NCBI GenBank assembly: GCA_024704765.1
Contig: JAKMXF010000099.1
Location: 1-64,000 of the forward strand
DNA: 64,000 nucleotides
Origin: Oopsacas minuta
Taxonomy: Eukaryota; Animalia; Porifera
Reading direction: 5' to 3'
Positions 3,001 through 34,000 of this stretch are shown in pieces; position 1 is the first letter of the stretch; every line of letters starts with the position of its first letter. The notes beneath the pieces are model-generated. The model worked only from the letters and a program-made list of their open reading frames with translations. It did no database searches and was not told where the DNA came from. A program made the position numbers and the translations under genes.

Positions 3001-6000
3001 CGATTGCTGACGACAGGAATCATTTGAGTGAAAATTAAACTGAAGATCTTGTTCGTCATTTTCTGCTAAGCTAAGTATGACGACACAGGGCACACAGCTT
3101 TGACTTGAACCTGCTATTTCAGCGGTGCTAGACTCTAACGTGGGGTATACTACAGGCTGCTCGGGAATAAGAGAAAGATTAGAGAAAGAACTGGGCTGAC
3201 GATTATGTTCATCACTAACGCTGGCCCGCTCATTCTGCGGGATGTCTTTGAAAAATCTCTTAATTCCAGTCAGCTTTGCCCACTTTGAAATAACATTGTT
3301 TCGAGACATGGGTTTCAATCCGTTTCTTTAAGGAGATAATGGAGTTCTTATCTTGAACGATGGAACGCTAATAGTACATAAAAGGGGTCAAAAAATAAAA
3401 ATGACTGGTGGGGAAAATTTGCATTAAAATATTGAATGAGAATTATTATATCTATCTGTATTATAAACAATTTCAAAGACGAAAAAGTGGCGGGGGGGCA
3501 TTAAAATAGGCGTCTCCTCCAGTCCAAAAAGTGCGGGGACGCGTCCCCAAATCCCCCCAGGATTTACAGCCCTACTAGCGTGCTATACTTGCTCGAAATA
3601 TGCGGCAAAAAATGTTCATATGATTAATTCAAAAGTGTGAAAATTGGATTACGCAAATTTGATATTTTAGCCAAGTTATATAGCATTTTGTTTGCGTTAT
3701 TCATTACACGATAAATTCGTAATTATCAGGATCGCGAAATTCGAAATCATAATAGCATCCTCGAAAACCTTTTCCTTGAAGACGAACAAACAGACAAATA
3801 AACTACAATTGAGAGTTAATATCATAGATATTATCCCACTTGCAATTTCATTGACCGCAAATTCTTCCATTTAGTTGCAGCAGAAACTTCGTACCAATAT
3901 ATAGTTGGAATTGACAGAGAGGATGTATTACTGTTGTGTGATCCAATGGATAGTGGGAGTTTAAGCACATTGAGATGGACACTATTAGGTGGCGGAGAGT
4001 TTCTAAATCCTATCAATATATATAACTCAAGAGCTTATCTACCCGAAGATTCTACAGAATTTACTTGCAAGAGGGGTGCAACAATATTTTCAACAAACAC
4101 CATCAGTGTAATAGGTACATCTTGTATTTTGAATGAAATATTCTTTTGATCACAATTATGGATTCAATTGTTTGTAGCTCCCTCGTTAACTATAAGTTAT
4201 GGTGTTGTACCAGCTGGAAGCGTTTCACTACTCTATCCAGATATGAATACGCTAGCAGTTCCTTCAGTCGTACAAGATGTCACCCTGTCAATCAATATTG
4301 ATGGTAGTTGGACTCTTCAAGACAATACTTACTCTACAGGATCTACTTTAACCATTCCAAATTTTTCATCACAAGAAGATGGATTATACATGTTCTATGC
4401 TAACAATTGGGATAATGTTGTAGTATGTGTCATACAAATTCAATTGACATCTTCAGCTACAGTGACAGGTATGTTATATTATCAATGTTTCCTGAGGAAT
4501 TGTATGTTATCTGCCATACCACTCACATTCGATATATTCTGTTGAAAAGCTTTCGATCCTATCGAAAGTAATCGAATTGAATACAATATATTCCTGTAGG
4601 AACTCCAGATATTGAACTAACATATGACAATTCAGCAATTGGGTTCTTCACTAGCACTGATACAACATGGTTTACTAGTCAACTTGATTGCCTGAACTGG
4701 GGAGGAAATCTTGTTACAATCAAGTCAGCAATAGAAGATAGCTTACTGTTCTATAGTAGTACAGATGTCGATACATACTTTTCATGTTGGATAGGTCTAA
4801 ATGGTATAGAAATTGATGCTGGCATTGATGCCGATGCATTTGTGTGGGTAGATGGTAGTAACAGTACTTATAGGAACTTCGGTACACTTGGACATTCATA
4901 TCCTGTAGCAACAACCACTTGGGACTGTGTCAGAAACAGATATAAATCCACTGGTGAATTATCAACCGGTTGGGCAAATCAAGCATGCTCTGATACTACA
5001 AATTGTTACTTCTGCAGTAAACAAGGTAATTGATATATATCAAAAGGTCTTATTACACATTAGTTACTATAACCGTATTTTCATGCATTTTATCTCTAAA
5101 ATTTATAGTTAACTCACAAGGATGTGATCTGATCTATAATGGATTTTGCTATCGAGCCTTTGAAGTGAGTGATGCTATCAACTGGTTAGATGCACAATCT
5201 AGTTGTGCTTTATGGGGTGGTGATTTGACCAGTATTACTACAGAGAGAGATAGGAATTTCTTATACACTATTATCCCTGATACAGTGAGTAATTGCTGGA
5301 TAGGATTGAATGATAGAGATAATAACGATGGAACATATACCTGGATTGATGGTTTAGTATCTACTTATACTAATTGGCCAAATAGCCCACCAAATACGGG
5401 CAATGAAGACTGTGTAGAAATAACAAGTGCTGGAGGAGGTAGTTGGGAAACCGTGGACTGTGAAACAACCATAAATGCTTTTCTATGTAAAAGAGCTTCA
5501 TCTGTAACAACAGGTCAGTATATATTATTTATACTATAAACGTTAATAATTTGATATTGCATATGTGTATGCTTTAGCTGGTGGAGTATTTGGACAACTT
5601 ACTAATGGAAGATTAGACTTTGTGACAATTCGTGAAAACACATTTTTGTTCACCCCACATACATTAGCTTATGGAGGAGAAGAGAAAATAGCCATTAGAT
5701 GGCTATTTTCAGAGAATTCAGATCTATCATCTAGTCGACCAGAAACGCCAACCTATGAGAATATTGACGCTGGATGGAGCTGGTTAGCAGTTGATATTAC
5801 CCAACAAGGTTATTATCAGTGCGAGGCCAATTCAGTCACATATACGATTGGTTTGTATGATCCAGCCTTGACAATAGGTGAGCAGATTATTTTGATATTT
5901 ATTACACTAGCGTGGTAGGCTTGCTTGCACTGCCCCGCTTGCGAACACTTTGTGTTCGCATTGGACCCGATACTTCGTGCCTCGAATTGAGTAATTTTCA

Positions 6001-9000
6001 ATCTCTCAACATATTCCCAACACGTTGGTGATAATTCCCTATTTGTCATCAGCGTACACGTTTACCCCAGGTTATTGTTTGAAAGCACCTTTCTGGGATG
6101 AATTGGAAATTTGTGTGCTTTCTCCACCCATGATTGTAAGTAGTCACAATAGATAGTTTAAATACTACCCCTAATTCTCTCCTGAGACCAAACCTCTTGA
6201 ATCATAAATATTTTTCTTGATTGCACAATAACTACGCCATTATCCGGATCGCGAAGTTCGAATTCAGAATAGCATTCTAGAAATCGTTTTCCTTGACAAC
6301 AAATGAACAAACAATAATTTAGATTGAATTACATAGATATTATCCCACTTACTAATTTCCTGACATCAAATTCTTCTCTATAGTTGCTGCAGGAGCTTCC
6401 TCATACCAATATTTAGTTGGAATTGACAGAGAGGATGTATTACTGTTGTGTGATCCAATGGATAGTGGGAGTTTAAGCATGCTGAGATGGACTCTATCAG
6501 GTGGCGGAGTGTTTCATAATCCTATCAATATATATAATTCAAGAGCTAATTTACCAGAGACTTCCACAGATTTTACTTGCAAGAGGGGTGTAACTGTATT
6601 ATCAACAAATTCCATCAGTGTAATAGGTACATCTTGTATTTTGAATGAAATATTCTTTTGATCACAATTATGGATTCAATTGTTTGTAGCCCCCTCGTTA
6701 ACTATAAGTTATGGTGTTGTACCAGCTGGAAGCGTTTCACTACTCTATCCAGATGTGAATACGCTGGCAGTTCCTTCAGCAGTACAAGATGTTATCCTGT
6801 CAATCAATATTGATGGTAGTTGGACTCTTCCAGATAATACGGACTCTACAGGATCTACTTTAACCATTCCAAATTTTTCATCACAAGAAGATGGATTATA
6901 CAAGTTCTATACTAACAACTGGGATGATGTAGAAGTATGTGTCATACAAATTCAATTGACATCTTCAGCTACAGTGACAGGTATGTTATATTATCAATGT
7001 TTCCTGGGGAATTGTATGTTATCTGCCATACCACTCACATTCCATATATTCTGTTGAAAAGCTTTCAATCCTATCGAAAGTAATCGAATTGAATACAATA
7101 TATTCCTGTAGGAACTCCAGATATTGAACTAACATATGACAATTCAGCAATTGGGTTCTTCACTAGCACTGATACAACATGGTTTACTAGTCAGCTTGCT
7201 TGCCTGAACTGGGGAGGAAATCTTGTTACAATCAAGTCAGCAATAGAAGATAGCTTACTGTTCTATAGTAGTACAGATGTCGATACATACTTTTCATGTT
7301 GGATAGGTCTAAATGATATAGATGTAGATGCTAGTACTTATGCTGGTGCATTTGTATGGGTAGATGGTAGTAACAGTGCTTATAGGAACTTCGTTTCAGA
7401 AACTGGAATAATAAGTCCCTCAGGAGTTGCTGGTCATGATTGTGTTAGGTTCAGATACATGAATCTAGATGACCTATTATCAGCCGGTTGGATAAATCGA
7501 GCTTGTCAAATAACTAGAAATTGTTACTTCTGCAATAAACAAGGTGAGTGATAATACATAAAATATCTGACTCGAAATTGAGTACTTCAAGATAATACAT
7601 AGAAAATGGGTGAAGCATTGTGACATAGAGTTATGAATTCAATTCCATTCTTATATAATTCACTCAACTAGAAATACGTATTCTCAGAATGTAGTTTCAA
7701 ATTTTTGAATAGGAAACTCACAAGGATGTGATCTTATCTATGACGGATCATGTTATCGAATATTTGAATTGAGTACTGGAATCAACTGGTTAGATGCTCA
7801 ATCCAGTTGTGCTGTATGGGGTGGCGACTTGACTAGTATTACTACAGTGAGAGAGAATAATTACTTATACACTATTATCCCTGATACAGTGAGTAATTGC
7901 TGGATAGGATTGAATGATAGGAATGTAGAGGGAACTTATACCTGGACTGATCGTTCATTGTATAGTCATACAAACTGGACCGGAAGTGAACCAACTGTTA
8001 TTGATGAAGATTGTGTTAACATAATACGAGCTGGAGAGGGTAGTTGGGGGACTGTGGACTGTGAAACAATGAGAAATGCTTTTCTATGTAAAAGTCCTTC
8101 ATCTGAAACAACAGGTCAGTAATCCTGTGCCATTTGGATAATATTATATTTTGAATCAGCTAATTTTTCATATTCTGTTTTAGTTGGAGGATTCGGACAA
8201 CTTACCAATGGAGGATTGGACTTTGAAACAATTCGTGAAAACACTTTTTTGTTCACTTCACGTACATTAGCTTATGGAGGAGAAGGGAATATACCCATTA
8301 CATGGATATTTTCAGAGAATTCAGATTTATCATCTAGTCAACCAGAAACAGCAACCTATGAGAATATGCAAGTTGGATGGAGCTGGTTAGCAGTTGATAT
8401 TACCAAGCAAGGATATTATCAGTGTCAAGTCAATTTAGTAACTTATACGATTGGATTATATGATAATTCATTAACAACTAGTATGTATATCTTTGTGTGA
8501 TATATTCCATATATTATTATTCCACTTACTACTCTACTGACCTTAAATTCTTCCATTTAGTTGCAACAGAAGGTACTCCATATGTATACATAGTAGGGGT
8601 AGACAGAGAGGATGTATTACTGTTATGTGATCCTGTGGTCAGTGGTGATTTAAGTATGCTGAAGTGGTCTCTAACAGGTAGTGGAGATTTCCTGAATCCT
8701 ATCAACATATATAATGAGAGGAATAATTTACCAGAACAATCTACTGGCTTAAATTGTGTGAGAGATTCAAGTATTATATTTTCAAACTTTATCAGCGTAC
8801 AAGGTAACTATTTCATTAATTATTATTCTTTGATTATTTTGATTTTGATACTACAGGGAACATATTTATGCTGACCATATAATGGACTGGCTGTTAGAAA
8901 GAAATGATGCGGAAATCGTATTAGTCTCCATTTGCATGTGTTACATTGTAGGTTCCATTATATCTATATTAATATTGTGTGTTTGTTTTAGTTCCAGAAA

Positions 9001-12000
9001 TAACAATTCAAATTGGTAGCATCAGTGCTATTAAATTCACGGAAGTCTGTCCAGCTATGAATGAAATAGATATTGCATTAACAACAAAAGATATCACTCT
9101 TTCTACCAACATTGATGGGAAATGGAATATTCTTGGAACTACCAACTCTACTGGATCTACTACAATAATTGGTAATTTCATTGAAAGAAATGCTGGATTA
9201 TATAAATTCTATATGAACAACTGGGATGGAGTTGATGTGTGTGCTATACAAGTTAATCTTTCATCTTCATCAGCTATTACAGGTAACAGTTACTTGATAT
9301 TTGTAATTAATTTTATGCTCGCCGAGATTGAATTTGATGATTAACATGATAATAATTTTGTTTGTTAGCAATGAACCCAGAACAAGAATTTATATTAGAT
9401 GATACTACTTTTGGATATTTTACAATTTCCTCTGGGATCAACTGGATAACTGCACAACTCAATTGCATCAACTGGGGAGGAAATCTTGCTACAATCAAGT
9501 CAGCAGAAGAAGACAGCTTATTATTCTATAGCATAACAGATTTAGATAATGCTTTTTCATGTTTAATTGGTCTAAATGATATAGATGTAGATGCTGGTAC
9601 TGATGCTAGTGCATTTGTATGGGTAGATGGTAGTAACAGTACTTATAGGAACTTCCAATCTGATTTTGGAATAGTAAGTCCCTCAGATATGTTGCCTCGT
9701 TATGACTGTGTTAGATTCAGATACCAAGTCGGAGGTGTAGTATCAACCGGTTGGATTAATCGACAGTGTGATGTTACTAGAGTTTGTTACTTCTGCAATA
9801 AACAAGGTAGGTTATTATTGGTGACAATATAATACCTTAATATATGTATCACCTGAATATAATACATCCAGGAATGAAAAGACAAGAAATTAAATTGCTA
9901 AGATGTTTATCCGTCTTTCAACGAAGATTTATTACGTATAATACGTTCAATCTACAATTTATAGTTACGTAACTTCAATTAGGCTAATTTCTATAATATT
10001 ATTTCGCATCAAAACAGTAGTTCTTGAATTGTTAATGACGAATATCAGCATAGTTAATCAACTGATATGATAATATTGTGACTTATACAAGTCGAACAAT
10101 GCCAAAATTTCATATTTCGAGGTTAACCTATACGTATAATACATTACAATACATCGCGTATACCGTATTATACAACTTAGTTAAAAAGACAAGAATAAAT
10201 GTAAATTCATTTCTTATCAATCAACCATACACTAAACATGTATTCTCAAACATATATTTTCTGAATTTGATAGGTAATTCACAAGGATGTGATCTGATCT
10301 ATGATGACTTTTGCTATCGATTATTTGAAGTGAGTACTGGAATCAACTGGTTAGATGCTCAATCTACTTGTGCTGTATGGGGTGGTGATTTGACTAGTAT
10401 TACTACAGTGAGAGAGAATAATTACTTATACACTATTATCCCTGACACAGTGAGTAATTGCTGGATAGGATTGAATGATAGGAGCGTGGAGGGAACATAT
10501 ATCTGGACTGATGGTTCAGTATATAGTCATACAAACTGGACAGGAAGTACATCAACTGTTATTGATGAGGATTGTGTTGACATAATACGAGCTGGAGAGG
10601 GTAGCTGGGGGACTGTAGACTGTGAGGATACTCTAAACACTTTTATATGCAAAAGAGCTTCAACTAGTACTATAACAATAGGTTTGTGACTTTATACTAC
10701 GGATATACATATATTTTAGAAATTTTTCATATTGACAATGTCTACCTTCAGTTGGTAGATTTGGAGAACTCACCAACGAAAGATTTGACTTCCAACTGAT
10801 TAAGTCAAATACTTTCTTGTTCACTTCACTTACATTAGCTTGTGGAAGCAATGAAAATAATGTTATCGTCTGGAATTATTCTGTTAACTCGGATCTATCA
10901 AATGGTGAAGTACTTACAGCAATATATAGTAGTACAGAGAATGGATTGAGCTGGCTGACAGTTGATATTTACAAACAAGGATATTATCAATGTCAAACCA
11001 ATTCATTAACTTTTACTATTGGTTTATATAATACATCCTTAACAACAGGTGAGTATATATTTCTGATATTTTCTATAATATCCCACTACTACTCATTGAA
11101 CTTGAATTCTTCTATTTAGTTGCAGCAGGAGTTTCATACCAATATATAGTTGGAATTGACAGAGAGGATGTATTACTGTTATGTGATCCAATGGATAGTG
11201 GAAGTTTAAGCACATTGAGATGGACTTTATCAGGTGGCGGAGAGTTTCATAATCCTATCAATATATATACTTCAAGAGCTGATTTACCGGAGGCTTATAA
11301 CGAATTTACCTGCAAGAGAGATGCTACTGTATTTTCAACAAATACCATCAGTGTAATAGGTACATCTTGTATTTTGAATGAAATATTCTTTTGATCACAA
11401 TTATGGATTCAATTGTTTGTAGCTCCTTTGTTAACTATAAGTTACGGTGTCGTGCCTGCTGGAAGCTTTCAACTACTCTATCCAGAGATGAATACGCTAG
11501 CAGTTCCTTTAGCAGTAAAAGATGTTATCCTGTTAATCAATATTGATGGTAGTTGGACTCTTCCAGATAATACGAATTCTACAGGAACTACTTTAACTAT
11601 TCCAAAATTTTCATCACGAAACAATGGAATATACAATTTCTATACTAACAACTGGGATAATGTTGAAGTATTTATTATCCAGATAAACCTGACATCTTCA
11701 ACTACACTGACTGGTATGTTATCGCTCAATTGAGACACAATCAGTGAAAATGACTGGTAGTGCAGCTAAGTGATAATTATGTGTTTTGTTCTTTTCATGG
11801 GGGGTGGCACGACCCCTAGACCCTCCCGTATTGATGTCGCAATGCACCAGACTCCTTCCAAATTTGGGCTTAACGGCTGGATCTCAAAAATATTTAAAAC
11901 TATTCAATAATATTTGCCCATGCTTAACTTCATATTTTATCCTCAAACCCTATGGATAAAATTCCATGTAATATTCCCACAATTACCTTCTGTCTAACCT

Positions 12001-15000
12001 TTAAACGGGATCATCGGCACCAATTTAAAATATAAGCAAAAGCCTGCGAAATATTATTCATCATACGATTACTCACTGAATGAGAGATTTGGAAATGTCT
12101 CGAATATACTTCACTAGCAATTACAACGAAATCTCTAGAGTCATTTTGAAAATACAAATTGATGTGGAGTAGGATTAATCATATGCAGAGGCATAGCTAT
12201 CATTTCTTCTTCGGGGTTACGATTGAGGCTGCTGACAATTTATCTGGTATTGCTAGCAACTCCAATAATACTGAATCCACAGCAATGCAGGGGTTGCAAC
12301 TTGAGATGATGACGATCGCGCCGGGGTTGCCAGTAACCCCTTAGCTACTCCAATGATCATATCATCAATCATGTAGATATAGATTTGAAAATTTGAAATT
12401 AGAAATCTACATACTCGGTTACCCTGACTAGCAGGTAAAACGAAATTTGTAGCATAATTTGAAAAATATGCCAAAAGGTGTGAAATATAATAATCATTTA
12501 ATATATCTGTGAATTAGTAGCTCTGAAAATCTCAATATCGGGCTCTACACGCATAATTACCCTTACCAACAGGTTGAGACCTAATCTCTAGCATGAATTT
12601 GAAATTACTTAGAAGGTCTAAAAATATGATTAACTACCAAAAGGTTTGAAATATTAACTTGAAAATATTCATTCTCTGACCCATGATGTATATTTTCGTG
12701 TAAATCTTACTGTTAGATTTCGCACGGCAGCGCAGACGGACGTAAGTACGGACATCGTACATCGTCAAAGCTATTAAGGCATCTGCCTATAGGAGCTGTA
12801 CTAAAAACTCCTACATTGTATCAAATCGAAAAGTTATCGAATTTAATAAAATTTATATTATAGGAATCCCGGATATTGAACTAAAGTACGATAATTCAGC
12901 AATTGGGTTCTTCACTACCACTGATATATCATGGTTTACTAGTCAACTTGATTGCCTGAACTGGGGAGGAAATCTTGCTACAATCAAGTCAGCAATAGAA
13001 GATAGTTTACTGTTCTATAGTAGTACAGATATAGATACATACTTTTCATGTTGGATAGGTCTAAATGATATAGAAAATGATGCTGGTACTGATGCTAATG
13101 CATTTGTGTGGGTAGATGGTAGTAGTAGTACTTATTGGAACTTCGGTACACTTGGACAATCATATCCTGTAGCAACAGCTGCTTGGAACTGTGTCAGAAA
13201 CAGATATAAATCTACTGGTGAATTATCAACCGGTTGGGCAAATCAAGCATGCTCTGATACTACAAATTGTTATTTCTGCAGTAAACAAGGTAATTGATTA
13301 TATCAAAAGATGTGTTACTCCTTAGTTACTATAACGGTATTTTCTGGTATTTGATCGCATCTGAATTTGTAGATAACTCACAAGGATGTGACCACATCTA
13401 TAAAGGATCATGTTATCGACTATTTGAAGTGAGTATTGGAGTCAACTGGTTAGATGCTCAATCTAGTTGTGCTGTATGGGGTGGTGACTTGACTAGCATT
13501 ACCACACAAAGAGAGAATAATTACTTATACACTATTATCCCTAATACAGTGAGTAATTGCTGGATAGGATTGAATGATAAGAGTGTAGAGGGAACATATA
13601 CTTGGTCTGATGGTACAACAGTTAGTTATGCAAACTGGACAAATCTCCCAACTACTGCTGGTGATTGTATTGAGATTAAAACAGATGGAGGTGTTAGTTG
13701 GGAAACTGTGAACTGTGAGGATGCTCTAAACACTTTTGTATGCAAAAGAGCTTCAACTAGTACTGTAACAATAGGTTTGTGACTGTATACTACGGATATA
13801 CATATATTTAGGAATTTTTCATATTAACAATATCTACCTTCAGTTGGTAGATTTGGAGAACTCACCAACGAAAGATTTGACTTCCAACTGATTAAGTCAA
13901 ATACTTTCTTGTTCACTTCACTTACATTAGCTTGTGGGGGGGAAGAAAGTAATAATATCATATGGAATTTTTCTCAAAACTCAGATTTATCGAATGGTGA
14001 AGTCCTTGCAGCAACATATTGTAGTACTGAAAATGGATTTAGTTGGTTAGCAGTTGATGTAAATAGACAAGGTTATTATCAGTGCCAAGCAGATTCATCA
14101 ACTTATATTATTGGTTTATATAATACATCCTTAACAACAAGTGAGTATATTATTCTGATGTTTTCTACCTACGTATTCCACTTACTAATTCATTGACTTC
14201 AAAATCTGTAATTTAGTTGCTGCAGGAGCTTCCTCATACCAATATATAGTTGGAATTGACGGAGAGGATGTATTACTGTTGTGTGATCCAATGGATAGTG
14301 GGAGTTTAAGCACATTGAGATGGACTCTATTAGGTGGCGGAGAGTTTCTAAATCCTATCAATATATATAATTCAAGAGCTAATTTACCAGAGACTTCTAC
14401 AGAATTTACTTGCAAGAGGGGTACAACTGTATTATCAACAAATTCCATCATTGTAATAGGTACATCTTGTATTTTGAATGAAATATTCTTTTGATCACAA
14501 TTATGGATTCAATTGTTTGTAGCTCCCTTGTTAACTATAAGTTACGGTGTTGTACCAGCTGGAAGTGTTTCACTACTCTATCCAGAGGTGAATACGTTAG
14601 CAGTTCCTTCAGCAGTACAAGATGTTATCCTGTCAATCAATATTGATGGTAGTTGGACTCTTCCAAATAATACGGACTCTACAGGATCTACTTTAACCAT
14701 TCCAAAATTTTCATCACAAAAAGATGGATTATACAAGTTCTATACTAACAACTGGGATAATGTAGAAGTATATGTCATACAAATTCAATTAACATCTTCA
14801 ACTACAGTGACAGGTATGTTATATTATCAATGTTTCCTGGGGAATTGTATGTTATCTGCCATACCACTCACATTCCATATATTCTGTTGAAAAGCTTTCG
14901 ATATTATCGAAAGTAATCGAATTGAATACAATATATTCCTATAGGAACTCCAGATATTGAACTAACATATGACAATTCAGCAATTGGATTCTTCACTAGC

Positions 15001-21000: not shown

Positions 21001-23813
21001 AAGTTCCCTGAAAAGGCGAATGTTAAGAGCACTCGATTTAATAAAATTTACGATCTTAATAACTAGTTTCATCACTGGTAAAAGCTGTGCTGGCATAGTT
21101 TTACAGGCAAGTGCTTGTCTATGAATCATGCAATGTGTGCTTGTGACTTCTGGCGATCTATCCTTAATAAGCTTTTGGAAACCAGAACGTGAACCAAGCA
21201 TTGCTGGCGCGTCGTCGGTACAAACTCCACACAAATCCTTCCACTCAATTTTATTATCTTGGAAAAAGCTATTGCCTTCGTTGTGGTTTCAAGTTCGCGT
21301 CATAGCGAAAACTCTTCCTTAAATTTTTTCTCGTGCACATAACGGACGTAAACCAATAATTGTGAACATGAAGATACATCAGTTGACTCATCAAGTTGCA
21401 ATGAGAACAATTTAAAAGGGCTGGATTTTAACTGTTTTACAACTTGCATCAAAATATTGTTTGACATCTCAGATATACGTCTGTGAACAGTGTCATTAGA
21501 TAAGGGAATTGATGATAAATTCCTAGCATGCTCATCACCAAAAACAAGTCGAACAATATCTTTCGAACAAGGGAGAATAAGGTCCTCTCCAATTCTATGA
21601 GGCTTTTTTGCTCTTGCAATTCGGAACGAAACAACATACGAAGCCTCAATACAAGCAAATGATTGCTGGTGATATGCACCTGTTATGTCCAGTCTTGACC
21701 GCTTTAAAACATCTTCCTTCCTTTTAAAAAAAGAAGGATCCTTTTCTAAATACTCAGGATGACGAGTTTCCAGATGTCGTTTTAATTTACTCGGTTTCAT
21801 AGATTCTCCTGATAGCGTGTCACAACAAATAACACATTGGGGCTTTTCAATTCCTGAATTTCGAACAACATTAAAACCATATTCAATGTAGCTGTCATTG
21901 TACTTCCGTCTTTTGGGTGCTGTGGCCATAATTTTCTAATATTTTTGATTGAATGTTACTAAAATACAAGTATAAAGTTAATATATGTAGCTCATGATAT
22001 GCATATTGATTAAGAAGTTTACTAATTACAACCCAAGTGTAAAGAATAAACTCGAGATGTCACTTTTATAATGAAAAACCTCAAGTTAATTCTTTACACC
22101 TTGGACTCTAAATTTGAGGATCATTAAGGTATACTTTCAGAATATTACTATATCTCGCGACCCCCAGTTTGAGAACCACTGGCATAGACGATGTATAGTC
22201 TTCCGATTAGAATGAAATTGGGTAAACATATTCATTTGGGGCGTAGTTTTGCTTTTGCAGAGATAGAGTATGAAAAATCTCTGAATTGTTTGTGGTGCAG
22301 CTCCTATAAACATCAATTAATGGCAAGTATTATGTGGGACGTGCATACTTCTAAGAAATTCAGCAGTCTGATTGATATGAAAATTGGAATAAATATACGA
22401 TTGTACATGTTGGATCTGTGATTTGCTCCTCAGTTATATGTTGTATTTTCATTGAATTTTTCTGACAATTTTTTAGTGATATATCATACTCTAGGGTGCG
22501 ACCCGTGCGGGCTTTATTGTAAATCACGGGCTGAAAAGAGTCAAAAAGAACAATTTTACAGATGATGAATATACTTTAATTATAGAATTAGGTCATGAAA
22601 TTATTACTATTTTAGTATTTGTAAGTATCACAAGTATTATAAATGTTATTTTCGTTTAATCTAATAATCCTCATAGAGAGGTAGAATCATGTCAGTGTTA
22701 TCTGTAACTAACGAAACAATCAAAGTGTTGCATATATATAAAGTTTCATATATATACTATTTGCGCACACGATTTCCCGCATCTTATAACGCGGAATTTA
22801 TATGAATTCTCAATTCTTTGAGAATACATTCACGAATTCAGCCAACAGTGCCATAAAATAAACAAATTTCCTAAATCACGGGCTGGTGGAATAAATAAGC
22901 GGGCCGCGGGCCGCGGGGTTTGATAGCGGGCCACGGACCACGGGCTTTACGGGCCGCACCCTAGATCATACTTCCTCACCTTTCTAAGTACAATTCTAAT
23001 CGCTCACGGATATTAGGTTTAACATGATGTCAGAACAAATTATGTTTATTGTGTATAGAGTCCGATTTAGACATTTTCAGAGTCTCAAGGTTATCAATTC
23101 ATACAAATGTTAATTATGTTGTAACCTGACCAATGGGACAGTCTCCTATTGCCATGAGGGGAACCTAACCAATGGTACAGTCTCCTATTACCATGAGAGG
23201 GTATTCCAGTTGTAGATGCCAATTTTGATATTTCAAATATACATGATTAATCACATCATTAATCATATTTCCCACTTTATCACAAATAATTTGTATCAAG
23301 TAGAAATTTGACCAGATGTCTGAGCTGCGCTCCAGGTTTCGACTTGATATTTTTATTATTCTAGACATTGCTACAATAACAATCAGCTACGAAGGATATA
23401 ACGATTCAATCAGTGATGTAACTAATCCAATGTTTCCATCTCCAAAAGTGATCAGTATACCTCTGGGAACAAAAGATATAACATTAACCTGCAGTCTACC
23501 TGAATGTGTATGGATTATTCCAAACCAAAAAGATACAATCACTACATCTACATATAGTATCCCCGAATTATCTAGTACAAATAGTGGAATTTTCTCCCTG
23601 ATACGGCTAACTGGTTCTGGTGTAACTTACACAACTGCTCATATATCTATTCGAACATTAACAATTACGACAAATCCTACAACATACATACTAATTACAA
23701 TAATTATCTTTTTGTTCATGGCTATCCTAATTGGTACGTTCATTCCACTATCAATTTTCATCTTCATATGCATAAAGAGAAGAAAAGGCAATAAGGATAT
23801 GGAGGGATCATAG
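1..23813 (+). CDS. Gene A: giant multi-exon type I membrane receptor, (CTL-CTL-Ig-Ig-Ig)x6+ then 2 Ig-like domains, TM and a very short cytoplasmic tail; 5' end lies outside the window
   Basis: Exons read by hand from AG/GT boundaries: <1-292, 3875-4114, 4178-4468 | 4600-5025, 5109-5513, 5578-5877, 6384-6626, 6690-6980 | 7112-7543, 7713-8114, 8184-8480, 8561-8803, 8992-9282 | 9369-9806, 10274-10681, 10752-11048, 11120-11359, 11423-11713 | 12864-13289, 13373-13774, 13844-14140, 14217-14459, 14523-14813 | 14945-15376, 15631-16032, 16101-16397, 16473-16712, 16775-17065 | 17163-17609, 18011-18418, 18480-18776, 18924-19166, 19221-19502 | 19566-19850, 23365-23813. All internal exon lengths are multiples of 3 with phase-1 boundaries. 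CTL motifs: C..WGG.L, WIGL, W.DG, DC, W...C, FC. Ig motifs: C..W..GYYQC. Last exon has TM ILITIIIFLFMAILIGTFIPLSIFIFICI then KRRKGNKDMEGS*. Confidence 0.85.
329..3573 (-). mobile_element. Decayed hAT DNA transposon (ZMYM1/DUF4371-type transposase) in an intron of gene A
   Basis: 8-bp direct repeat ACTAGCGT at 321-328 and 3574-3581. Imperfect TIRs AGGGCGTTAATCC / AGGGCTGTAAATCC; exact ends uncertain by about 1 bp. Minus-strand fragments: TTF-type zinc finger (WLHYS..KKVLCFYC..GFDNWKKA), CFAITVDGKQDVSGREQ, YFHCASHISNL, and hAT dimerisation domain (PVSSCECECSFSALRRLKTWLRATMTQHRLN). Split over several frames. Confidence 0.85.
4600..6980 (+). CDS. Gene A cassette 1 (exons CTL-a, CTL-b, Ig-c, Ig-d, Ig-e)
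   Basis: Exons 4600-5025, 5109-5513, 5578-5877, 6384-6626, 6690-6980; match ORF-track fragments 4842, 5030, 5565, 6446 and 6680. Confidence 0.85.
5907..6337 (-). mobile_element. Non-autonomous Helitron in intron c1-d1 (an older copy of the same insertion at ~322/3575-3828 is split by the hAT)
   Basis: On the minus strand: A|TCTATG...TTGTTTGTTCATTTGTTGTCAAGG 5' end, hairpin GCGAACAC-AAA-GTGTTCGC near the 3' end, CTAG|T terminus, no TSD. Paralogous c-d introns (e.g. 11049-11119, 16398-16472) are ~70-80 bp and lack it. Confidence 0.7.
7112..9282 (+). CDS. Gene A cassette 2
   Basis: Exons 7112-7543 (open CTL missed by the ORF track; translated by hand), 7713-8114, 8184-8480, 8561-8803, 8992-9282. 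Confidence 0.85.
9369..11713 (+). CDS. Gene A cassette 3
   Basis: Exons 9369-9806, 10274-10681, 10752-11048, 11120-11359, 11423-11713. Confidence 0.85.
12322..12807 (-). mobile_element. Helentron/HINE-like non-autonomous element in intron e3-a4
   Basis: Minus strand starts TTTTTAG-TACAGCTCCTATAGG, has a GTCC/GTCT microsatellite-like tract, and ends GGAGTAGCTA plus hairpin GGGGTT-ACTGGC-AACCCC. This intron is 1150 bp versus ~90-130 bp in the other cassettes. Confidence 0.35.
12864..14813 (+). CDS. Gene A cassette 4
   Basis: Exons 12864-13289, 13373-13774, 13844-14140, 14217-14459, 14523-14813. Confidence 0.85.
14945..17065 (+). CDS. Gene A cassette 5
   Basis: Exons 14945-15376, 15631-16032, 16101-16397, 16473-16712, 16775-17065. 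Confidence 0.85.
15390..15472. mobile_element. 83-bp Tc1/pogo-like MITE
   Basis: TIRs CAAGTAAACCTCCCAAAGCG / CAGGTAAACCTCTCAAAGCG; right flank TA. The paralogous intron at ~7550 shows the empty site GATAA-TA-CATAAAA. Confidence 0.7.
17163..19502 (+). CDS. Gene A cassette 6 (membrane-proximal, most divergent c/d/e exons)
   Basis: Exons 17163-17609, 18011-18418, 18480-18776, 18924-19166, 19221-19502. Confidence 0.85.
20045..22181 (-). mobile_element. hAT Buster-family transposon (ZBED5/SCAND3-like transposase, disrupted) in the last intron of gene A
   Basis: 16-bp perfect TIR CAGTGGTTCTCAAACT. TSD GCATAGAC (20037-44 and 22182-89) fits the Buster NNNTANNN preference. Transposase fragments at 21929-20280: BED finger CVICCDTLSGESMKPSKLKRH, FSLQLDESTD, CTDDAPAM, HCMIHRQAL, LLPFPTTY. 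Empty site in the duplicate block at ~53047. Confidence 0.95.
22491..22964. mobile_element. 474-bp non-autonomous hAT-type element
   Basis: Ends CTAGGGTGCGACCCGT / ACGGGCCGCACCCTAG; 8-bp TSD ATCATACT. The duplicate block has a single ATCATACT at ~53523. Confidence 0.85.
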
Positions 23814-26103: not shown

Positions 26104-26397
26104 TTCTATTCTATTATTGAACTATATTTACAAAAACAAAATTGGGGTATTTTTATGACTTTTTATTTGTTAGAAAGAACTGTTTCTTAATCGGAAAGTC
26201 CTTTAGAATTGTGTATATTTCGCTTTTGTTTGTTAAATAATGTATTCTATAATTATCAAATAACATTATGGTATAAGTATGTATGTGTGGGAATTGTGAT
26301 AACACATTACAGAACACATAAAGCACTATAATATATTTATGAGGGAAATTAACTGGATATTCTAGATAAATTATACTAGATATTATATTACAATATA

Positions 26398-27315
26398 CAG
26401 TCAGGGGACAAAAGTATTCGACCACACAAATATATTGTCATAAATTGTATACTCTTTCCCGCTCCTATATATTGTGTAGTCTATATTCGTAGCTGCTATC
26501 TAGTAATTTGTATAGAATAACATATGTTTTTCAAGAATTTCAAAAAATTATTTTAGATTGACACTTTTTGAAGGTGTTAATTATTAATAATTATTAGATT
26601 ATTATTGATAATCAAAATATGTGGTAATTCAAAACCTATTAAGAATCTATAATTTCTGACTTGATATTTGAATTCTACGTAGGCGAGTTACCCCAGATTG
26701 AAATTTCCAATCGGATTGAGCAAATTTACCAGAGTTATTGATGACTTTCAATTTTGTGCCATTTGTGCCACCTTTTTGCCGAAGGTGGCATAAGTGGCCG
26801 CTACCAAGAGGTTATTTTGGAATTCAAGGGTTAGCATAGTCATATCATTCGAAAATATTACTTCGACTTATTTCTCCTAACCCTAGTTGATTTCCTTGTA
26901 GTGGCGCTTTTTCCTGCTACCTGTGCCACTTTTTTCAAAAAGTGGCACAAGTGGGACAAATTGAAATTCTTTTATAACTTTGGTAAAAATTGCTCAATCC
27001 GATTGGAAATTTCAACCTGGGGTAACTCGCCTACGTAGAACTCAAATATCAAGTCAGAAATTATAGATTCTTAATAGGTTTTGAATTACCACATATTTTG
27101 ATTATCAATAATTATCTAATAATTATTAATAATTAACCCCTTCAAAAAGTGTCAATCTAAAATATTTCTTTGAAATTCTTGAAAAACATATGTTATTCTA
27201 TACAAATTACTACATAGCAGCTACGAATATAGACTACACAATATATAGGAGCGGGAAAGAGTATACAATTTATGACAATATATTTGTGTGGTCGAATACT
27301 TTTGTCTCCTGACTG
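26398..27315. mobile_element. 918-bp foldback element (Tc1-like ends, ~370-bp TIRs)
   Basis: TA|CAGTCAGGGGACAAAAGTATTCGACCAC ... GTGGTCGAATACTTTTGTCTCCTGACTG|TA. Arms ~26398-26765 and ~26945-27315 are near-perfect reverse complements around a ~180-bp spacer. No coding capacity. Confidence 0.9.
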
Positions 27316-28018
27316 TATATATACAATAGACTCCGCGTTCTATTTAATAGAACATCGATTAATCTTGTCAACTTGGTTATTCTGGGGTCAAGGAGCCAGA
27401 CACAGAACCATACAAATAGTATTAATTTATTTCAGTTAATCGGGCCAACATCATTATTCCACTTTATCTGGTTAAAATGGCCTTGTCCAGATGTGACCCT
27501 ATTAAGAGGACTTTAGTGAAGTAGGATACTCAACAAATCGGGATTATGTTATTCTATCACTGATAAATATTAATACACAACTATATAATTTAGTATACAA
27601 TATAATTTCCTTAAGTTTAAATACTCGTCACACCACGGTAATACAACAGGTGTATATAATTCTACAAATAATGATTACATTGGAATATTTAGATAACATT
27701 TATATTCATGTGGACTATGGCACTGATCTCATTTCCTGTATTAGATAAGACAGGATAATCTACAAATTCGGGGAAGAATTACTCTATAGGGTGTCGGTGA
27801 GTGTACCAAACTACCAACAATTGTTTCCAAGAAACTAAAACTAAAACTCTGCTAATAACGTATTGCAAAATAGTGTTGTGTTCCAATGTACTCAAATGAT
27901 ATATCAAATTTCTGAAGTTGTAAATTATCCTCTCAAATACATTGTATGACTATATAATGAAATCAGTAGATAATTTATTAATCATCAATTTAAATCTAAA
28001 CTCCTGAAGAAATTGAAC

Positions 28019-31000
28019 ATGAAAACTCTCTGTTATAAAATTGGATTATTCTTAGCTATAATTGGTTCATTGATTAGAATCAGATCAGGTGAGTACCTTA
28101 ATTAGAATTTATGTGTAAACATCTAGTAAATGTATTAGACTAATAGTTATCATGAATACTCAGTTAATTATTTACATATTTGAATGTATTTGTTGTGCTT
28201 TAGCTCAAGCTCCGGTTCCGGACCTTGCGTTTACATTCGATGATACTGACTTCAGTTTCTTCACGCTGGCAGAAAATAATATTAATTGGGTTGAAGCTGA
28301 AACAGAGTGCATAAATTGGGGAGGACATCTTGCTACAATCAAGTCAGAACAAGTTGACAGCTTATTCTACTATACTATAGAAGATATACAGATATATACT
28401 TCCTGTTATATAGGTCTGAATGATAGGCAGAATGACGCTGGTACTAATGCTAGTGCATTTGTATGGGTAGATGGTAGTACTAGTAGTTATAGAAAGTTCG
28501 GTAATACTCCTGGTACGATACAATACCCCATTGGATTAGGTCCGAATAATATTCATGATTGTGTTAGGTTAAGGTACAGAAGTGGGACTGGAATATCAAA
28601 CGGATGGATAAATGGGGCTTGTACCCTAGGTAGAAACTGTTACTTCTGCAATAAACCTGGTAAGTTATCAATCAAGAATAATTTGTATGAATACATTAGA
28701 ATGCTAATATCTTAACTCTATATTACAGCAGTATTATTGAATAGTACCAATTCCATAGGTGTACGAGGAAGGTTAAGTGGAGTATTAGCAATAATTAGAA
28801 TGTTGAATGAATTATTAAGGGACCTTAACTCCTTAAGCTCCTAGCAGTTAAATTAATTACTACACGTCACTGTATACTTGGAGAATTGATAGTAAGTCGA
28901 CTAATATATAGGCAAATTTCATTGTATTTATTTTCCAGTAACACCCAGTGAATGTGATCTGATCTATGATGGATTGTGCTATCGATTGTATGAAGTGAGT
29001 ACTGGAATCAACTGGTTAGATGCTCAGTCTAGTTGTGCTGTATGGGGTGGTGACTTGACTAGTATTACTACAGAAAGAGAGAATAATTACTTATACACTA
29101 TTATCCCTGATACAGTGAGTAATTGCTGGATAGGATTGAATGATAGGAGTGAAGAGGGAACATATACCTGGACTGATGGTTTAGTATATAGTTATACAAA
29201 CTGGATAGGGAGTGAACCATCTAATTTTTATGAAGATTGTGTTGACATGATAAAAGCTGAAGGGGGTAGTTGGGAGACTGCGGACTGTGAGATAACAACT
29301 ATAAAGACATTCTTATGCAAAAGACCTTCATCTGTAACTACAGGTCAGTATAATAGGAATGCTACAATACTATATAAATAATAGCTATTGGATACAATAA
29401 ATTATACAGATCATATTTTAGCGGTGAGATTTGGACAACTTACTAATGGAAGATTAGAATTCGAAACAATTAGTGAAAACACTTTCTTGTACAAATCACT
29501 AACGTTGGCTTGTCGAGGAGATGAGGCTAGTGCTATTGTATGGAAATTTTCAAAAAACTCAGATCTATCAAATAGTGTATTCATGACAGCAACATATAGT
29601 AGTACAGATACTGGATTAAGTTGGTTAGCAGTTAATATTAATAAACAAGGATTTTATCAGTGTCAAGTCAATTCATTAACTTATACGATTGGTTTGCATG
29701 ATACGTCCTTAACAACAGGTGAGTAGATCATTCGTTAATATATTCAAATATTTTCCACTTGTACTTTCGAACCTCCAATTCTATCTAGTGGCTGTATCAG
29801 GATCTACATACACGTATATAGTAGGAATAGACAGAGAGGACGTATTACTGTTATGTGCTCCTACTGACACCGTTAGTTTGAGTTTGTTGAGATGGACTCT
29901 ACTTGGTGCAGTAAGTAATACAGATTTTCTAAATCCTATCAACATCTACGAAGAGAGGGATAATTTATCTGATCAATCTACTGATTTCAATTGTATGAGA
30001 GGTTCAAGTACACTTTCTACAAACTTCATCAGTGTGAAAGGTACCGGTAACTATTTATTTCTATCCAGATTGTCTCAGAAAACTACCGCGGGAGTGGAAC
30101 CAAGGTTACAACCGAATAATATTTTGAGAATAATTCAATATTCGGTTACCAACCGAATATCAGTATTCGGTTGATTTCGCCGAATAATATCTGTATTTGG
30201 TTAGCTATTCATGAACACTGATACCCGATTAGATCGGTTTCAACCCTGCGCGGAACCTAGTGGTTGCTATACAGGTTGATTAGTATGAAAACTATATTTC
30301 GAGATTGTATTGTTTGTTATGTACATGTGTCGACTATATAGAGATTCAATGACAATAAGTTCCACTTTAAATAAATACAATTATTTTTTTAGTTCCAGAA
30401 TTAACCATTCAAATTGGTAGCATCATTGCTAGTAGATTCACAGCCGTATGTCCAGTTGTGAATGAGATTGTCATTCCATTAACAACAAATGATATTTCCC
30501 TCTTTACTAATATTGATGGGAAATGGAATATTCTTGGAACTACCAACTCGACTGGATCTACTACAACAATTGATAATTTCATTGAAGGAAATGCTGGATT
30601 ATATAAATTCTATATGAACAACTGGGATAGAGTTGATGTGTGTGCTATACAAATTACTCTTATATCTTCACCTGCTATTACAACAGGTAATATAGACATT
30701 GTTACTTTAGTATTTAATCTTGGAAATTCGAAGAATAGACTCGGGTCTAGTTATTACGAACGCAAGCGACCGTCCAGATCTGTACTCCTTGTAGATAGTT
30801 TCCTAATTCAATTTAGAACTAATTATCCAGGTGGATATAGTTCACCAAATCAATAGAGGAAAGTAAGTATTCACTAAATATTAAGCTTAGCTATACATTT
30901 GTGAAAAGGATAAATTAGTTCAGCTGATGGCTTTATGATATCCTTCATGTATAATTTAGCAATAAGAGAAATTTCAACAGCTAAGACTACTTTTGGATAT

Positions 31001-34000
31001 TTCACGAATTCTGCTAACATAAACTGGATAACTGCCCAACTCTATTGCATCAACTGGGGAGGAAATCTTGCTACAATCGAGTCAGTAGAAGAAGATAGTT
31101 TATTGTTCTATAGTATAACAGATTTAGCTATATCTTATTCTTGTTGGATAGGACTGAATGACATAGATATAGATGCTGGTACTAATGCTGATGCATTTGT
31201 TTGGATAGATGGTAGTGCCAGTAGTTATAGGAACTTCGATTCACTTTTGGTACCAAATCCCTCAGATGCAAATGCTAATTTTGACTGTGTTAGCTTCAGA
31301 TACAGATACAGGAGTGGAGCACAAGTATTATCAACCGGCTGGATTAATCGAGGTTGTGGTAACATTAGAAATTGTTACTTCTGCAGTCAACCAGGTAAGC
31401 GATCGGTTTTTAACAACCAAATAATAAATTATCCATGAAACTAGATTGTGAGTTAAATGAAATTCCGTCCTTTCAACCCACCAAACTCGCAGTTACTATT
31501 CTCAAAAATTTAGTTTCATAATTTGAATAGGTAACTCACAAGGATGTGATCTGATCTATGATGAGTTTTGCTATCGATTATTTGAAGTGAGTGATGGAAT
31601 CAACTGGTTAGATGCTCAGTCTAGTTGTGCTGTATGGGGTGGTGACTTGACTAGTATTACTACAGAAAGAGAGAATAATTACTTATACATTATTATACCT
31701 GATATAGTGAGTAATTGCTGGATAGGATTGAATGATAGGAGTGTAGAGGGAACATATACCTGGACTGATGGTTCAGTATATAGTCATACAAACTGGACAG
31801 GGAGTGAACCATCTAATATTTATGAACATTGTGTTGACATAATAAGAGCTGGAGAGGGTAGTTGGGGGACAGTGGACTGTGGAACAATGAGAAATGCTTT
31901 TCTATGCAAAAGACCTTCATCTGTAACAACAGGTCAGCATAATAGGAATGCTACAATACTATATACATAATAGCTATTGGATACAATGTAATTACATAGA
32001 GCATGTTTTAGCTGTGAGATTTGGACAACTTACTAATGGAAGATTAGACTTTGTAACAATTAGTGAAAACACATTTTTGTTCACCTCACATACATTAGCT
32101 TATGGAGGAGAAGAGAATATAGCCATTACATGGATATTTTCAGAGAATTCAGATCTATCATCTAGTCAACCAGAAACAGCAACCAATGAGAATATACAAG
32201 GTGGATGGAGCTGGCTAGCAGTTGATATTACCAAACAAGGATATTATCAGTGTCAAGTCAATTCACTAACTTATACGATTGGGTTGTATGATCCATCCTT
32301 AACAACAGGTCAGCATATTTGGTACTCTTTGATTAGCCCAACTCATTTATCATTCTAATGTTCCATCTAGTTGCTGTATCTGGAACCACATACAACTATA
32401 CATTAGGAGTAGACAGACAGAATGTAGTGCTGCTATGCGATCCGATGGATAGTGGTAACCTGTCTGCGTTAATATGGTCTGTAGAGGGTAGTGCTACTCT
32501 TCCCAATCCAATCAACATATACAAAATGATTGGTGACAAGTCCATGGGTTACTATAGCATCAATTGTTCGAGAGATAGTGATGAAATATCAAAAAACAAA
32601 ATTTATTCTAGAGGTAGTGTGTTACGATTAAGAGATATGTTATCCAATTATCCTCACATTATTTCCTCTAGTACCACAAATAATCCTCCAATATGGTGAT
32701 CTCATTATTGAAAAATTTTCATCAGTTTATCCTGTCATGAATAATATTGAAATTCCTATTGGTATCACAAACATTTCTATTTCAAATACCATTGAGGGTA
32801 GATGGATGCTACCTGATGGAAGCTATTCATTCTCTACTCTAGAAATTTTAACTTTCACATCACAGTACAAAGGCGTGTATAAGTTATATATTACCAACTG
32901 GGATGGGCTAGAAGTCTGTGCAATACAGATCAATATTACTGTAACAACTGATGGAATTGGTAATCTATATATTTAATTCTCAATTGTTGTTAATTTGATT
33001 ATTTGTCTGTTTGTTTGTCTGTCGTCAAGGAAAGGATATACGGTATGCAATGTTGTCGCATAACTATGTATTTATCGTATTTATCAGGCAGTAATGTATT
33101 TCAATACAACTTAACTAAACATATCTAAAATACTGAATCCGATTTTGACATTTTTGATTGATCATATGTAAAATTATTGCTGTTTTATTAAAATATAGTA
33201 AACAAATTATCCTAATCTCAAACTATAAGTACAGGCTTGCTGAATCAAAATTTCGCATTTTCAAGTTGCTCATATTTAAATTTATAGTTATATTTATGCA
33301 TATAAAGTGAACAAATTTCAAATTGTTATAGAATCATAATTTCAAAAACTATACTGGGGTAATCGAGTATGCTGAGTCCGAATATGGCATGGAATATTTG
33401 TTAGTCCGTTGATTAGTAAATTTATTGTTGGTGTTTTATGAATATAAAGTAAACAAATTAGCACAATCTCAAAATTTACATAGATACTTACTCTCAACGG
33501 CTACAAAGGAGGTTGGTTTTCCAAAATAATTCAATAATATATATACCATATAAGTATATTTGTGAATTGCATGTTCTAAATATATCTGTATTATAATACC
33601 AGGGTCATGTGTGCCTATTTTATCTGCCCAGGTTAAACCCAAATATAAAACATCAGTGCTTCCCATCAGTCATAGCTTTTCTGATTAATACCATATTTTG
33701 AGGCTAGTCTGAAAATTATGGTATGTGATAACTGTATATTGTGTGTTCTTCATAAAGTTAATATTACATTTTTCCACCGTTTTACTTTCATCTTAAATAG
33801 ATAAGAACATATTCAGGTCCTCCAAGTTAACGTGTATGTTTTTAGCATACATACAAGCACCTTATTATGGTTGGTCATGCCATATGGCCAGGACATGGCC
33901 AGGTTGACCGGGCCATGTGACCAATTTCAACCTGGTCAAAACCTGGTCTGGAAAAATTCTGCTCAAGTTTGACTTGGTTAGTTTGCATTACTGGCATGCC

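Follow-up and report, generated by a model that had tools for sequence, protein, structure and literature searches.

The stretch of Oopsacas minuta DNA analysed here, positions 1 to 64,000 of contig JAKMXF010000099.1 and in the following called the window, carries on its + strand tandem five-exon modules, each composed of two C-type lectin-like domains (CTLDs; exons CTL-a and CTL-b) and three immunoglobulin-like (Ig-like) exons, X1-X3. The modules belong to at least two membrane-receptor genes. The ratio of nonsynonymous to synonymous substitution rates (dN/dS or omega) in the long loop of the lectin domains is about twice that of the background, yet it is not demonstrably above 1, and positive selection of the kind known from antibodies is unproven. 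The reading which we favour, with belief somewhat outweighing doubt, is that the locus holds a germline repertoire of old and distinct binding-face loops, set on a conserved CTLD scaffold which is patched by gene conversion, and that the loops evolve at a near-neutral rate.

Variation and selection in the C-terminal third

The long-loop/beta3-4 region is the ligand-binding surface of C-type lectins, and the motifs EPN or QPD together with WND set Ca2+-dependent binding of mannose or galactose. Amino-acid change in both lectin domains is concentrated in the C-terminal third, namely in the long loop, the beta3-beta4 turn and the beta4-beta5 loop. The mean pairwise proportion of nonsynonymous differences (pN) in CTL-a is 0.51 in the loop against 0.15 in codons 13-96, and the corresponding CTL-b values are 0.27 (loop part) and 0.07 (codons 1-81); Ig-like exons, at 0.21-0.27, lie between loops and frameworks. 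The alignment columns of CTL-b have a mean entropy of 0.60 bits over the first 80 residues and of 1.75 bits over the remainder. Less expected were high-entropy CTL-a positions in the N-terminal linker and in the alpha2-beta2 loop (alignment and DSSP). Within the whole family 84 of 87 CTL-a loops are distinct, with lengths of 11-21, and recurrent types can be recognized, GTLxxx[YF]Pxxxxxx[DN]C, ETGFPxxxVDRDC and QPGFPRSD..DRDC, each with a conserved Pro. The window loops of CTL-a fall into a few types and are not eight independent ones: copies 4605, 12869 and 17168 make up one type, 7117 and 14950 another, and 9377, 28218 and 30965 stand separately.

A sequence-only reading of this stretch had described loops differing in sequence and length inside near-constant, homogenised frameworks. 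All six CTL-a loops which it quoted are found in the exons named, and so are its CTL-b readings PPN, EPT, TST, LPT, AIT and EPS and WET and WGT. The near-constant framework holds in general, with departures in A28218 (NWGGHL), A30965 (TIES and FVWIDGS) and B31548 (YIIIPDIVSN). Variation is concentrated beyond chance, but the zone is the entire C-terminal third and the loop types are few. The count of 8 CTL-a exons stands, while of the nine CTL-b exons 8 are intact in the range given and the ninth, at 48454-48848, is frameshifted and lies outside it.

Exons were located by tblastn and motif scans, after which exact exon models were made from nucleotide alignments with flanks; all sequence searches were run exon by exon and not on spliced protein models. 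The intact lectin exons in the window, 8 CTL-a and 8 CTL-b, are given below, the CTL-b exons with the residues standing at the EPN and WND positions.

4600-5025, + strand, CTL-a of gene A module 1; loop 4881-4925, 15 aa, GTL...YP type
5109-5513, + strand, CTL-b; loop part 5354-5410; PPN; WET 5444-5452
7112-7543, + strand, CTL-a; loop 7393-7440, 16 aa, VSETG..SP type
7713-8114, + strand, CTL-b; loop part 7955-8011; EPT; WGT 8045-8053
9369-9806, + strand, CTL-a; loop 9656-9706, 17 aa, QSDFG..SPS type; the copy used for AlphaFold2
10274-10681, + strand, CTL-b; loop part 10516-10572; TST; WGT 10606-10614
12864-13289, + strand, CTL-a; loop 13145-13189, GTL type
13373-13774, + strand, CTL-b; loop part 13615-13665, two residues shorter; LPT; WET 13699-13707
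14945-15376, + strand, mosaic CTL-a; loop 15226-15273; ends like the 7112 copy, middle like the 9369 copy
15631-16032, + strand, CTL-b; loop part 15873-15929; AIT; WGT 15963-15971
17163-17609, + strand, CTL-a; loop 17444-17488, ATL...FP, of GTL type
18011-18418, + strand, CTL-b; loop part 18253-18309; EPS; WET 18343-18351
28204-28659, + strand, first CTL-a of gene B; loop 28500-28559, 20 aa, GNTPG..YPIG type
28939-29343, + strand, CTL-b of gene B; loop part 29181-29237; EPS; WET 29271-29279
30960-31394, + strand, second CTL-a of gene B; loop 31238-31285, 16 aa, DSLLVPNPS type
31531-31932, + strand, second CTL-b of gene B; loop part 31773-31829; EPS; WGT 31863-31871

The CTL-a copy at 17163 has a seven-residue insertion after beta3 which repeats SNGW (region 17489-17608); its donor reads T followed by GT, the base of the split codon being T and not G.

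Selection was analysed in four C-terminal data sets: the 8 window CTL-a exons, 24 CTL-a exons obtained by adding 16 from three other assemblies, the window CTL-b exons, and 23 CTL-b exons. A fixed-sites likelihood of the GY94 type (own code) with a separate rate multiplier for the loop was used, and because the exons are mosaics the codon models were fitted on segment-specific trees, the IQ-TREE trees being made from the C-terminal segment alone. The site tests used fixed branch lengths and grids and their p-values are approximate.

In sliding windows the Nei-Gojobori pN/pS (pS being the proportion of synonymous differences) is 1.2-1.5 in the CTL-a loop against 0.3-0.6 elsewhere, and the peak in CTL-b is 0.85-1.08. 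The likelihood estimate of omega in the loop of the eight window CTL-a exons is 1.54 (1.31 without the multiplier) against 0.47 in the rest of the segment, and in the likelihood-ratio test the loop differs from the rest (p=0.005) and not from omega=1 (p=0.23). With 24 CTL-a sequences the loop has omega 0.82 and the rest 0.32 (p~2e-4 against the rest, p~0.3 against omega=1). The loop part of the window CTL-b exons gives 0.62, which is not significant, and that of the 23 CTL-b sequences 0.71 (p=0.009 against the rest, p=0.08 against omega=1); the rest of the C-terminal segment of CTL-b is at 0.37-0.39. The N-terminal segments have omega 0.33 in CTL-a and 0.26 in CTL-b. All loop values are biased upward by the fact that the loop was picked for its variability.

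Independent sister pairs whose loops could be aligned unambiguously were also counted. Nine CTL-a pairs have 48 nonsynonymous and 13 synonymous loop differences (pN/pS 1.04, against 0.45 elsewhere; Fisher p=0.02), and ten CTL-b pairs have 71 and 28 (0.73, against 0.35 elsewhere; Fisher p=0.02). A two-rate site scan found one CTL-a site with beta>alpha (p=0.001, posterior 0.99), situated two residues before the conserved Pro, and in CTL-b a pair of sites at p=0.07, of which one is the position of the Glu of EPN (posterior 0.99). The same scan found strong constraint at the loop-region Pro (p<0.001), Asp-Cys, Gly and Trp. Tests of the M1a/M2a type gave no class with omega>1 in the 24- and 23-sequence sets or in window CTL-b, and no support for such a class in two N-terminal sets; among the four C-terminal sets the window CTL-a set gave a marginal result under M2a (p=0.047, top site with posterior at most 0.82).

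Loop sites do rise above background, about twofold, as the sequence-only reading had anticipated. Its further proposal, a positive diversification of binding specificity like that of antibody complementarity-determining regions (CDRs), is not demonstrated, since the loop omega is indistinguishable from 1 in CTL-a and is below 1 in CTL-b. Site models with recombination considered give a divided answer: one site reaches p=0.001, but the regional omega of 0.6-1.5 is never significantly above 1.

Mosaic exons and the age of the loop types

Mosaicism is observed directly in the CTL-a exon at 14945. This exon follows the 7112 copy at 43 informative sites, then the 9369 copy at 21 of 23 sites and then again the 7112 copy at 39 sites (maximum chi-square 88.5, permutation p<=0.002). 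The converted tract has its breakpoints in the NWGGNL patch and at YRNF, directly before the loop:

15058-15213, + strand, gene-conversion tract within the 14945 exon; alignment codons 41-92; 21/23 informative sites as in the 9369 copy

Between modules 1 and 2 the identity from X2 to CTL-a codon 90 is 93.6% (949/1014). Past that codon it drops to 65% (99/153) in the remainder of the exon, loop included, and to 50% in the next intron; the 5' two-thirds of the CTL-a exon at 7112 match module 1, and its loop and 3' end are of other ancestry. Because the following intron is equally divergent, the contrast between the loops of neighbouring modules is a breakpoint between segments of different ancestry and not local hypermutation. 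A somatic mechanism, or one like that of the diversity-generating retroelements (DGRs), was rejected on the grounds that the differences are fixed between germline exons and that the adjoining intron is equally divergent. The loops of the exon at 12864 and of the first module (4605) are 4 amino acids and 1 synonymous change apart.

The breakpoints coincide with patches of low pS, NWGGNL.TIK in CTL-a (pS 0.04-0.09) and TIIPDTVSNCWIGLND in CTL-b (0.05-0.14). The CTL-b patches comprise codons 21-45 and 56-70 (e.g. 18073-18222 in the window); their pS is 0.03-0.07 within another assembly and 0.15-0.20 between assemblies, the flanks being at 0.5-0.9 (L003-L005). At the protein level the framework sequence is conserved in all three sponge assemblies. 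Its constancy is carried for the most part by purifying selection (omega 0.26-0.33), to which a patchy gene conversion is added; the word homogenised was apt in so far as conversion and mosaics are present, and overstated in that the main cause is purifying selection.

The two segments of CTL-a give different trees. In the tree of the N-terminal segment five window copies form one clade (support 94/99), grouping by species, and a cross-species clade of the GTL type is rejected by the approximately unbiased test (p-AU 0.03). In the best tree of the C-terminal segment the window GTL loops join GTL loops of another assembly, and 7112 and 14945 are placed with 9369 and an O. minuta copy. The loop types appear old on these trees; they probably predate the species split and are shared between species.

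Lectin fold, receptor genes and their family

Both lectin exons match Pfam Lectin_C, CTL-a with 31.8 and 30.5 bits and CTL-b with 68 bits (cut-off 22.6), and PF00059 is found in all their relatives. The AlphaFold2 model of CTL-a (9369 copy) is a standard CTLD with a predicted local distance difference test score (pLDDT) of 93.8. It gave at least 500 CTLD matches in Foldseek with TM 0.71-0.84, the top ones being CD23, a scavenger-receptor lectin, carbohydrate-recognition domain (CRD) 2 of Endo180 and type II antifreeze proteins. The CTL-b model reached only pLDDT 46; the CTL-b profile matches the solved CTLDs of PLA2R, DEC-205 and the mannose receptor (7qsr at E=3e-93, a value summed over multiple domains, and also 7jpt). 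In both CTL-a and CTL-b there is little or no variation in the Cys, W-I-G-L and W columns, and CTL-b has the additional N-terminal Cys pair of long-form CTLDs.

HMMER aligned S-P-S...Y-D-C of CTL-a to E-P-N...E-D-C of a CD23 variant, and because of this alignment the conserved loop Pro of CTL-a is taken as the EPN proline and the quoted loop as the EPN-bearing part of the long loop. In the alignment the variable stretch thus corresponds to the long loop that carries EPN in CTLDs of solved structure, which agrees with its earlier placement in the ligand-binding region. The loss of the sugar-binding motifs is observed directly. The EPN position in the window reads YPV, SPS, FPI, YPI or NPS in CTL-a and PPN, EPT, TST, LPT, AIT or EPS in CTL-b, and the WND position WAN, WIN or WSN in CTL-a and WET or WGT in CTL-b. 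Neither feature of a classical C-type CRD, EPN/QPD in the long loop and WND on beta4, was found in the window CTL-a and CTL-b domains. Family-wide EPN is present in 2 of 87 CTL-a and 2 of 126 CTL-b domains, and WND in 2 of 87 and 0 of 126. Since the canonical Ca2+ and sugar residues are absent, non-classical ligands (non-sugar or non-canonical) are likely for these domains; such ligands had already been proposed, and with both motifs absent in the window and across ~210 relatives this appears a reasonable suggestion.

The architecture of the genes is observed directly. The module exons have conserved AG acceptors and GT donors, and every exon has phase 1 at both ends. Gene A runs in from the left edge of the window and has six modules, with CTL-a at 4600, 7112, 9369, 12864, 14945 and 17163. 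Gene B has two modules over 28204-32976, followed by one open reading frame (ORF) with a transmembrane helix and a protein tyrosine phosphatase (PTP) domain. The features outside the lectin exons of these two genes, and those of a third, partly decayed array at 48.4-54.4 kb, are as follows.

23316-23813, + strand, last Ig-like part, transmembrane helix and short basic tail of gene A
34746-36119, + strand, ORF of gene B with transmembrane helix, Tyr-rich juxtamembrane stretch and single PTP domain; PF00102 in all relatives
48454-48848, + strand, ninth CTL-b copy, near the 18011 copy, with a 1-nt deletion and a 2-nt insertion
48940-49206, X1 exon of the third array
49742-49885, X3 fragment of the third array
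53834-54355, transmembrane exon of the third array, 72% identical to that of gene A

Gene B has the layout of a receptor-type PTP, a transmembrane helix and then the PTP domain (PF00102), and its ORF at 34746-36119 is the predicted signalling end of the receptor; behind the transmembrane exon of gene A (23316-23813) no phosphatase exon was found. The catalytic HCX5R of the gene B PTP reads H-C-E-N-G-I-S-K. Because Lys replaces the Arg, phosphatase activity is doubtful and the domain may be inactive. The exons X1-X3 have the pattern C...W...DxGxYxC and no Pfam match, and their weak Ig-type neighbours in the ESM Atlas are a lead only. In three of eight X1 exons (5613-5879, 8216-8479 and 32044-32310) the first canonical Cys is Tyr (TLAYGG for TLACGG), and these domains would therefore be without the Ig disulphide. 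Judged by its sequence, the ninth CTL-b copy is a pseudo-exon or an assembly error, and the third array (48454-54355) has the appearance of a degenerating copy of gene A's final module. In gene A, the long intron that follows the last Ig-like exons and precedes the transmembrane exon contains ORFs of a hAT/zf-BED-type transposase (20280-21929, - strand), with weak Pfam matches to zf-BED, zf-C2H2_12 and DUF4371.

Four sequencing runs of one sample cover the stretch; they were used as Logan contigs and so give no heterozygosity or allele frequencies. Run X4 is RNA-like, with depth on exons only and with GT..AG joints (29716>29787, 30684>30958, 31930>32010 and 32611>32670), and the splicing of gene B is seen directly: the joints 28659>28940 and 31395>31532 lead from CTL-a to CTL-b and confirm the exon borders. 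The acceptor of the CTL-a exon at 28204 was set by the RNA-like joint from 28086/8 to 28202/4. This joint cuts out an ATG-led, signal-peptide-like ORF at 28152, and the true first exon of gene B may therefore lie upstream. Another joint, from 28656 to 31529, connects the 3' border of gene B's first CTL-a exon with its second CTL-b exon; it may mean that one module is skipped in frame, or that the contig is chimeric, paralogues having these flanks in common.

Runs X2 and X3 carry a non-coding haplotype with 16-18 differences per ~320 nt in the upstream flank, the higher count being 18 over 325 nt; in the first intron it has 7 differences over 72 nt. It is ~5-10% off the window (27900-28224, 28669-28740 and 32748-32866), run X1 matching the window, and points to high heterozygosity or to more than one individual. 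None of the differences listed from these contigs falls in the four loops of gene B, and one X3 contig spans 28471-28660 without change. This absence from the loops among the listed differences counts weakly against hypervariability of the alleles.

The nearest named proteins are all from Oopsacas minuta, with 86% identity for the CTL-b exon and 70% for the CTL-a exon; the nearest named match of the gene B PTP exon is the O. minuta 'RyPTPR4a' (56%), and window positions 34206-35537 are 89.5% identical in nucleotides to one O. minuta contig. By word search, relatives numbered at least 162 for the PTP exon, at least 98 for CTL-a and at least 148 for CTL-b; each of them came from O. minuta or from one of two European Nucleotide Archive (ENA) assemblies. 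These two assemblies have the same module order in tandem genes, with one or two PTP domains at the end. Two ENA contigs contain inverted, identical or near-identical module copies (L004, 8305-10142 and 11317-13154; L005, 174-1495 and 2558-3879), one CTL-a pair being slightly different. They are probably palindromic assembly artefacts, and the exact duplicates were dropped before analysis. A literature search found no description of this receptor family, and a review names one hexactinellid lectin only, AVL (PMC4557014). The locus belongs to a large, previously undescribed, glass-sponge-specific family of type I receptors.

Weighing the explanations

According to the reading which we favour the ectodomains would be strings of the unit CTLD-a, CTLD-b and three Ig-like domains, one domain per phase-1 exon, and the receptors would end in a transmembrane helix with a short tail (gene A) or with a tyrosine-phosphatase domain (gene B). 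The N-terminal two-thirds of the CTLD (helices, beta1 and the WIGL strand) would be under strong purifying selection and be overwritten locally by gene conversion or unequal crossover, with tract ends in those patches whose nucleotides are best conserved. The C-terminal third would be the usual CTLD binding face, made up of the long loop with the cis-Pro of the lost EPN, the beta3-beta4 turn and the beta4-beta5 loop; it would exist in a handful of old types and seldom be crossed by conversion. Within it the scaffold positions (G-T-L, [YF]-P and D-C) would be constrained, the others would drift at about the neutral rate, and a few positions at most would be positively selected. A single framework would in this way carry a variety of binding faces, whose ligands are probably non-sugar or non-canonical. 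Ligand binding by the loops and the role of the receptors are matters of inference.

Several points weigh against this reading. Saturation (tree length 7-37) and residual recombination within segments reduce the power of the tests. A loop omega near 1 is an average which could mask strong positive selection at few sites, and there are the one site at p=0.001 and the M2a result of p=0.047 for the window alone. The topology of the C-terminal tree is not secured, alternatives having p-AU 0.12-0.26 with an underpowered segment of 153 columns. Because the low-pS patches persist between species, part of the homogenisation may be due to constraint at the nucleotide level and not to conversion.

Some of these points would fit an alternative which we regard as unlikely and still worth keeping in view, namely that recurrent positive selection drives loop residues apart for new specificities, as in CDRs or at the contacts of natural killer (NK) receptors, while conversion keeps the scaffold uniform. 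It would account for a loop omega of 2-3 times the background (1.3-1.5 among window CTL-a), for the CTL-a site just mentioned with its posterior of 0.99 and the CTL-b EPN-Glu position (posterior 0.99, p=0.07), for the M2a result and for the distinctness of 84 of the 87 family loops with their lengths of 11-21. However, omega=1 is not rejected for any region tested, the CTL-b value is below 1, no class with omega>1 appears in the 24- and 23-sequence sets, the N:S ratio of the sister pairs is exactly neutral, and recent duplicates are only 0-4 loop residues apart. The lack of any listed read difference in the four loops of gene B counts weakly in the same direction, and the choice of the loop as a variable region inflates its omega. 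That the loops have no functional meaning we consider improbable. They would then be unconstrained surface, ligands would be recognised elsewhere (e.g. by the Ig-like domains or a conserved CTLD face), and divergence would merely block conversion. A CTL-a loop omega of ~1, the loss of the canonical ligand-coordinating residues and the fairly divergent Ig-like exons (pN 0.21-0.27) speak for it, but in the loops of three assemblies the Pro (p<0.001), the Asp before Cys and G-T-L are constrained, the loop types are kept across species, the loop in the AlphaFold2 model is ordered (pLDDT 86-93), and the CTL-b loop has an omega of 0.6-0.7 and not 1.

A bolder proposal, to which we give little credence, is a germline 'cassette' recognition, in which ancient loop cassettes would be reshuffled between modules and genes via conversion anchored in the ultra-conserved patches, resulting in individual-specific repertoires for the discrimination of self from non-self or of microbes. 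Phosphatase and short-tail endings would be paired in these repertoires, and in-frame skipping of modules may add diversity, all exons being of phase 1 and the RNA-like joint 28656 to 31529 being of this kind.

On the whole the glass-sponge receptors are nearer to the CTLD clusters of NK type and to the multi-CTLD receptors of mannose-receptor type than to CDRs. NK-cell receptors (Ly49/KLRA, NKG2/CD94 and KLRB/CLEC2) also form germline multigene clusters with CTLDs devoid of Ca2+ and sugar residues; their paralogues differ in the long loop and beta3-beta4, mosaic genes arise by conversion or unequal crossover, and relatives are paired with different signalling ends. Unlike the sponge proteins, which are type I with repeated CTLD-CTLD-Ig3 modules and an intrinsic PTP in some members, they are type II proteins that have one CTLD each and depend for signalling on immunoreceptor tyrosine-based inhibitory motifs or adaptors. 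We know of no MHC-like ligand in sponges. The mannose-receptor family (MRC1, PLA2R1, LY75/DEC-205 and MRC2/Endo180) gives the best sequence matches of CTL-b; its members are type I with tandem CTLDs, most of which are without EPN/WND and bind non-sugar ligands. This family differs in having few genes and 8-10 different CTLDs, and it is without Ig-like modules, PTP and a large tandem expansion; at the N-terminus its members have a ricin-type and a fibronectin type II domain.

The variable proteins of DGRs (e.g. Mtd of a Bordetella phage) likewise combine a constant scaffold with variation in the C-terminal portion of a CLec-type fold, but there the variation is made by reverse-transcriptase-mediated mutagenic homing in phages and bacteria, whereas in the sponge it is germline paralogue divergence and recombination. 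Expanded invertebrate C-type lectins, e.g. those of bivalves (PMC10140915), are a case of lineage-specific expansion and diversification of CTLDs in a marine invertebrate, and AVL of Aphrocallistes vastus shows that CTLD proteins exist in glass sponges (PMC4557014; PMC11278381). These lectins are mostly single-domain and secreted or membrane-bound, whereas the sponge domains studied here sit in modular receptors; AVL is Ca2+-dependent and binds galactose (PMC4557014; PMC11278381), and the window domains are without the Ca2+ site signature.

A constant framework with a variable loop can arise from purifying selection, relaxed constraint and breakpoint-limited conversion, and no demonstrable positive selection is needed for it. 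To our knowledge no immune-type receptor family with variable binding faces has been described in sponges. The family found here, with more than 100 modular CTLD/Ig receptors, is a candidate for the recognition of self and non-self or of symbionts in an early-branching animal.

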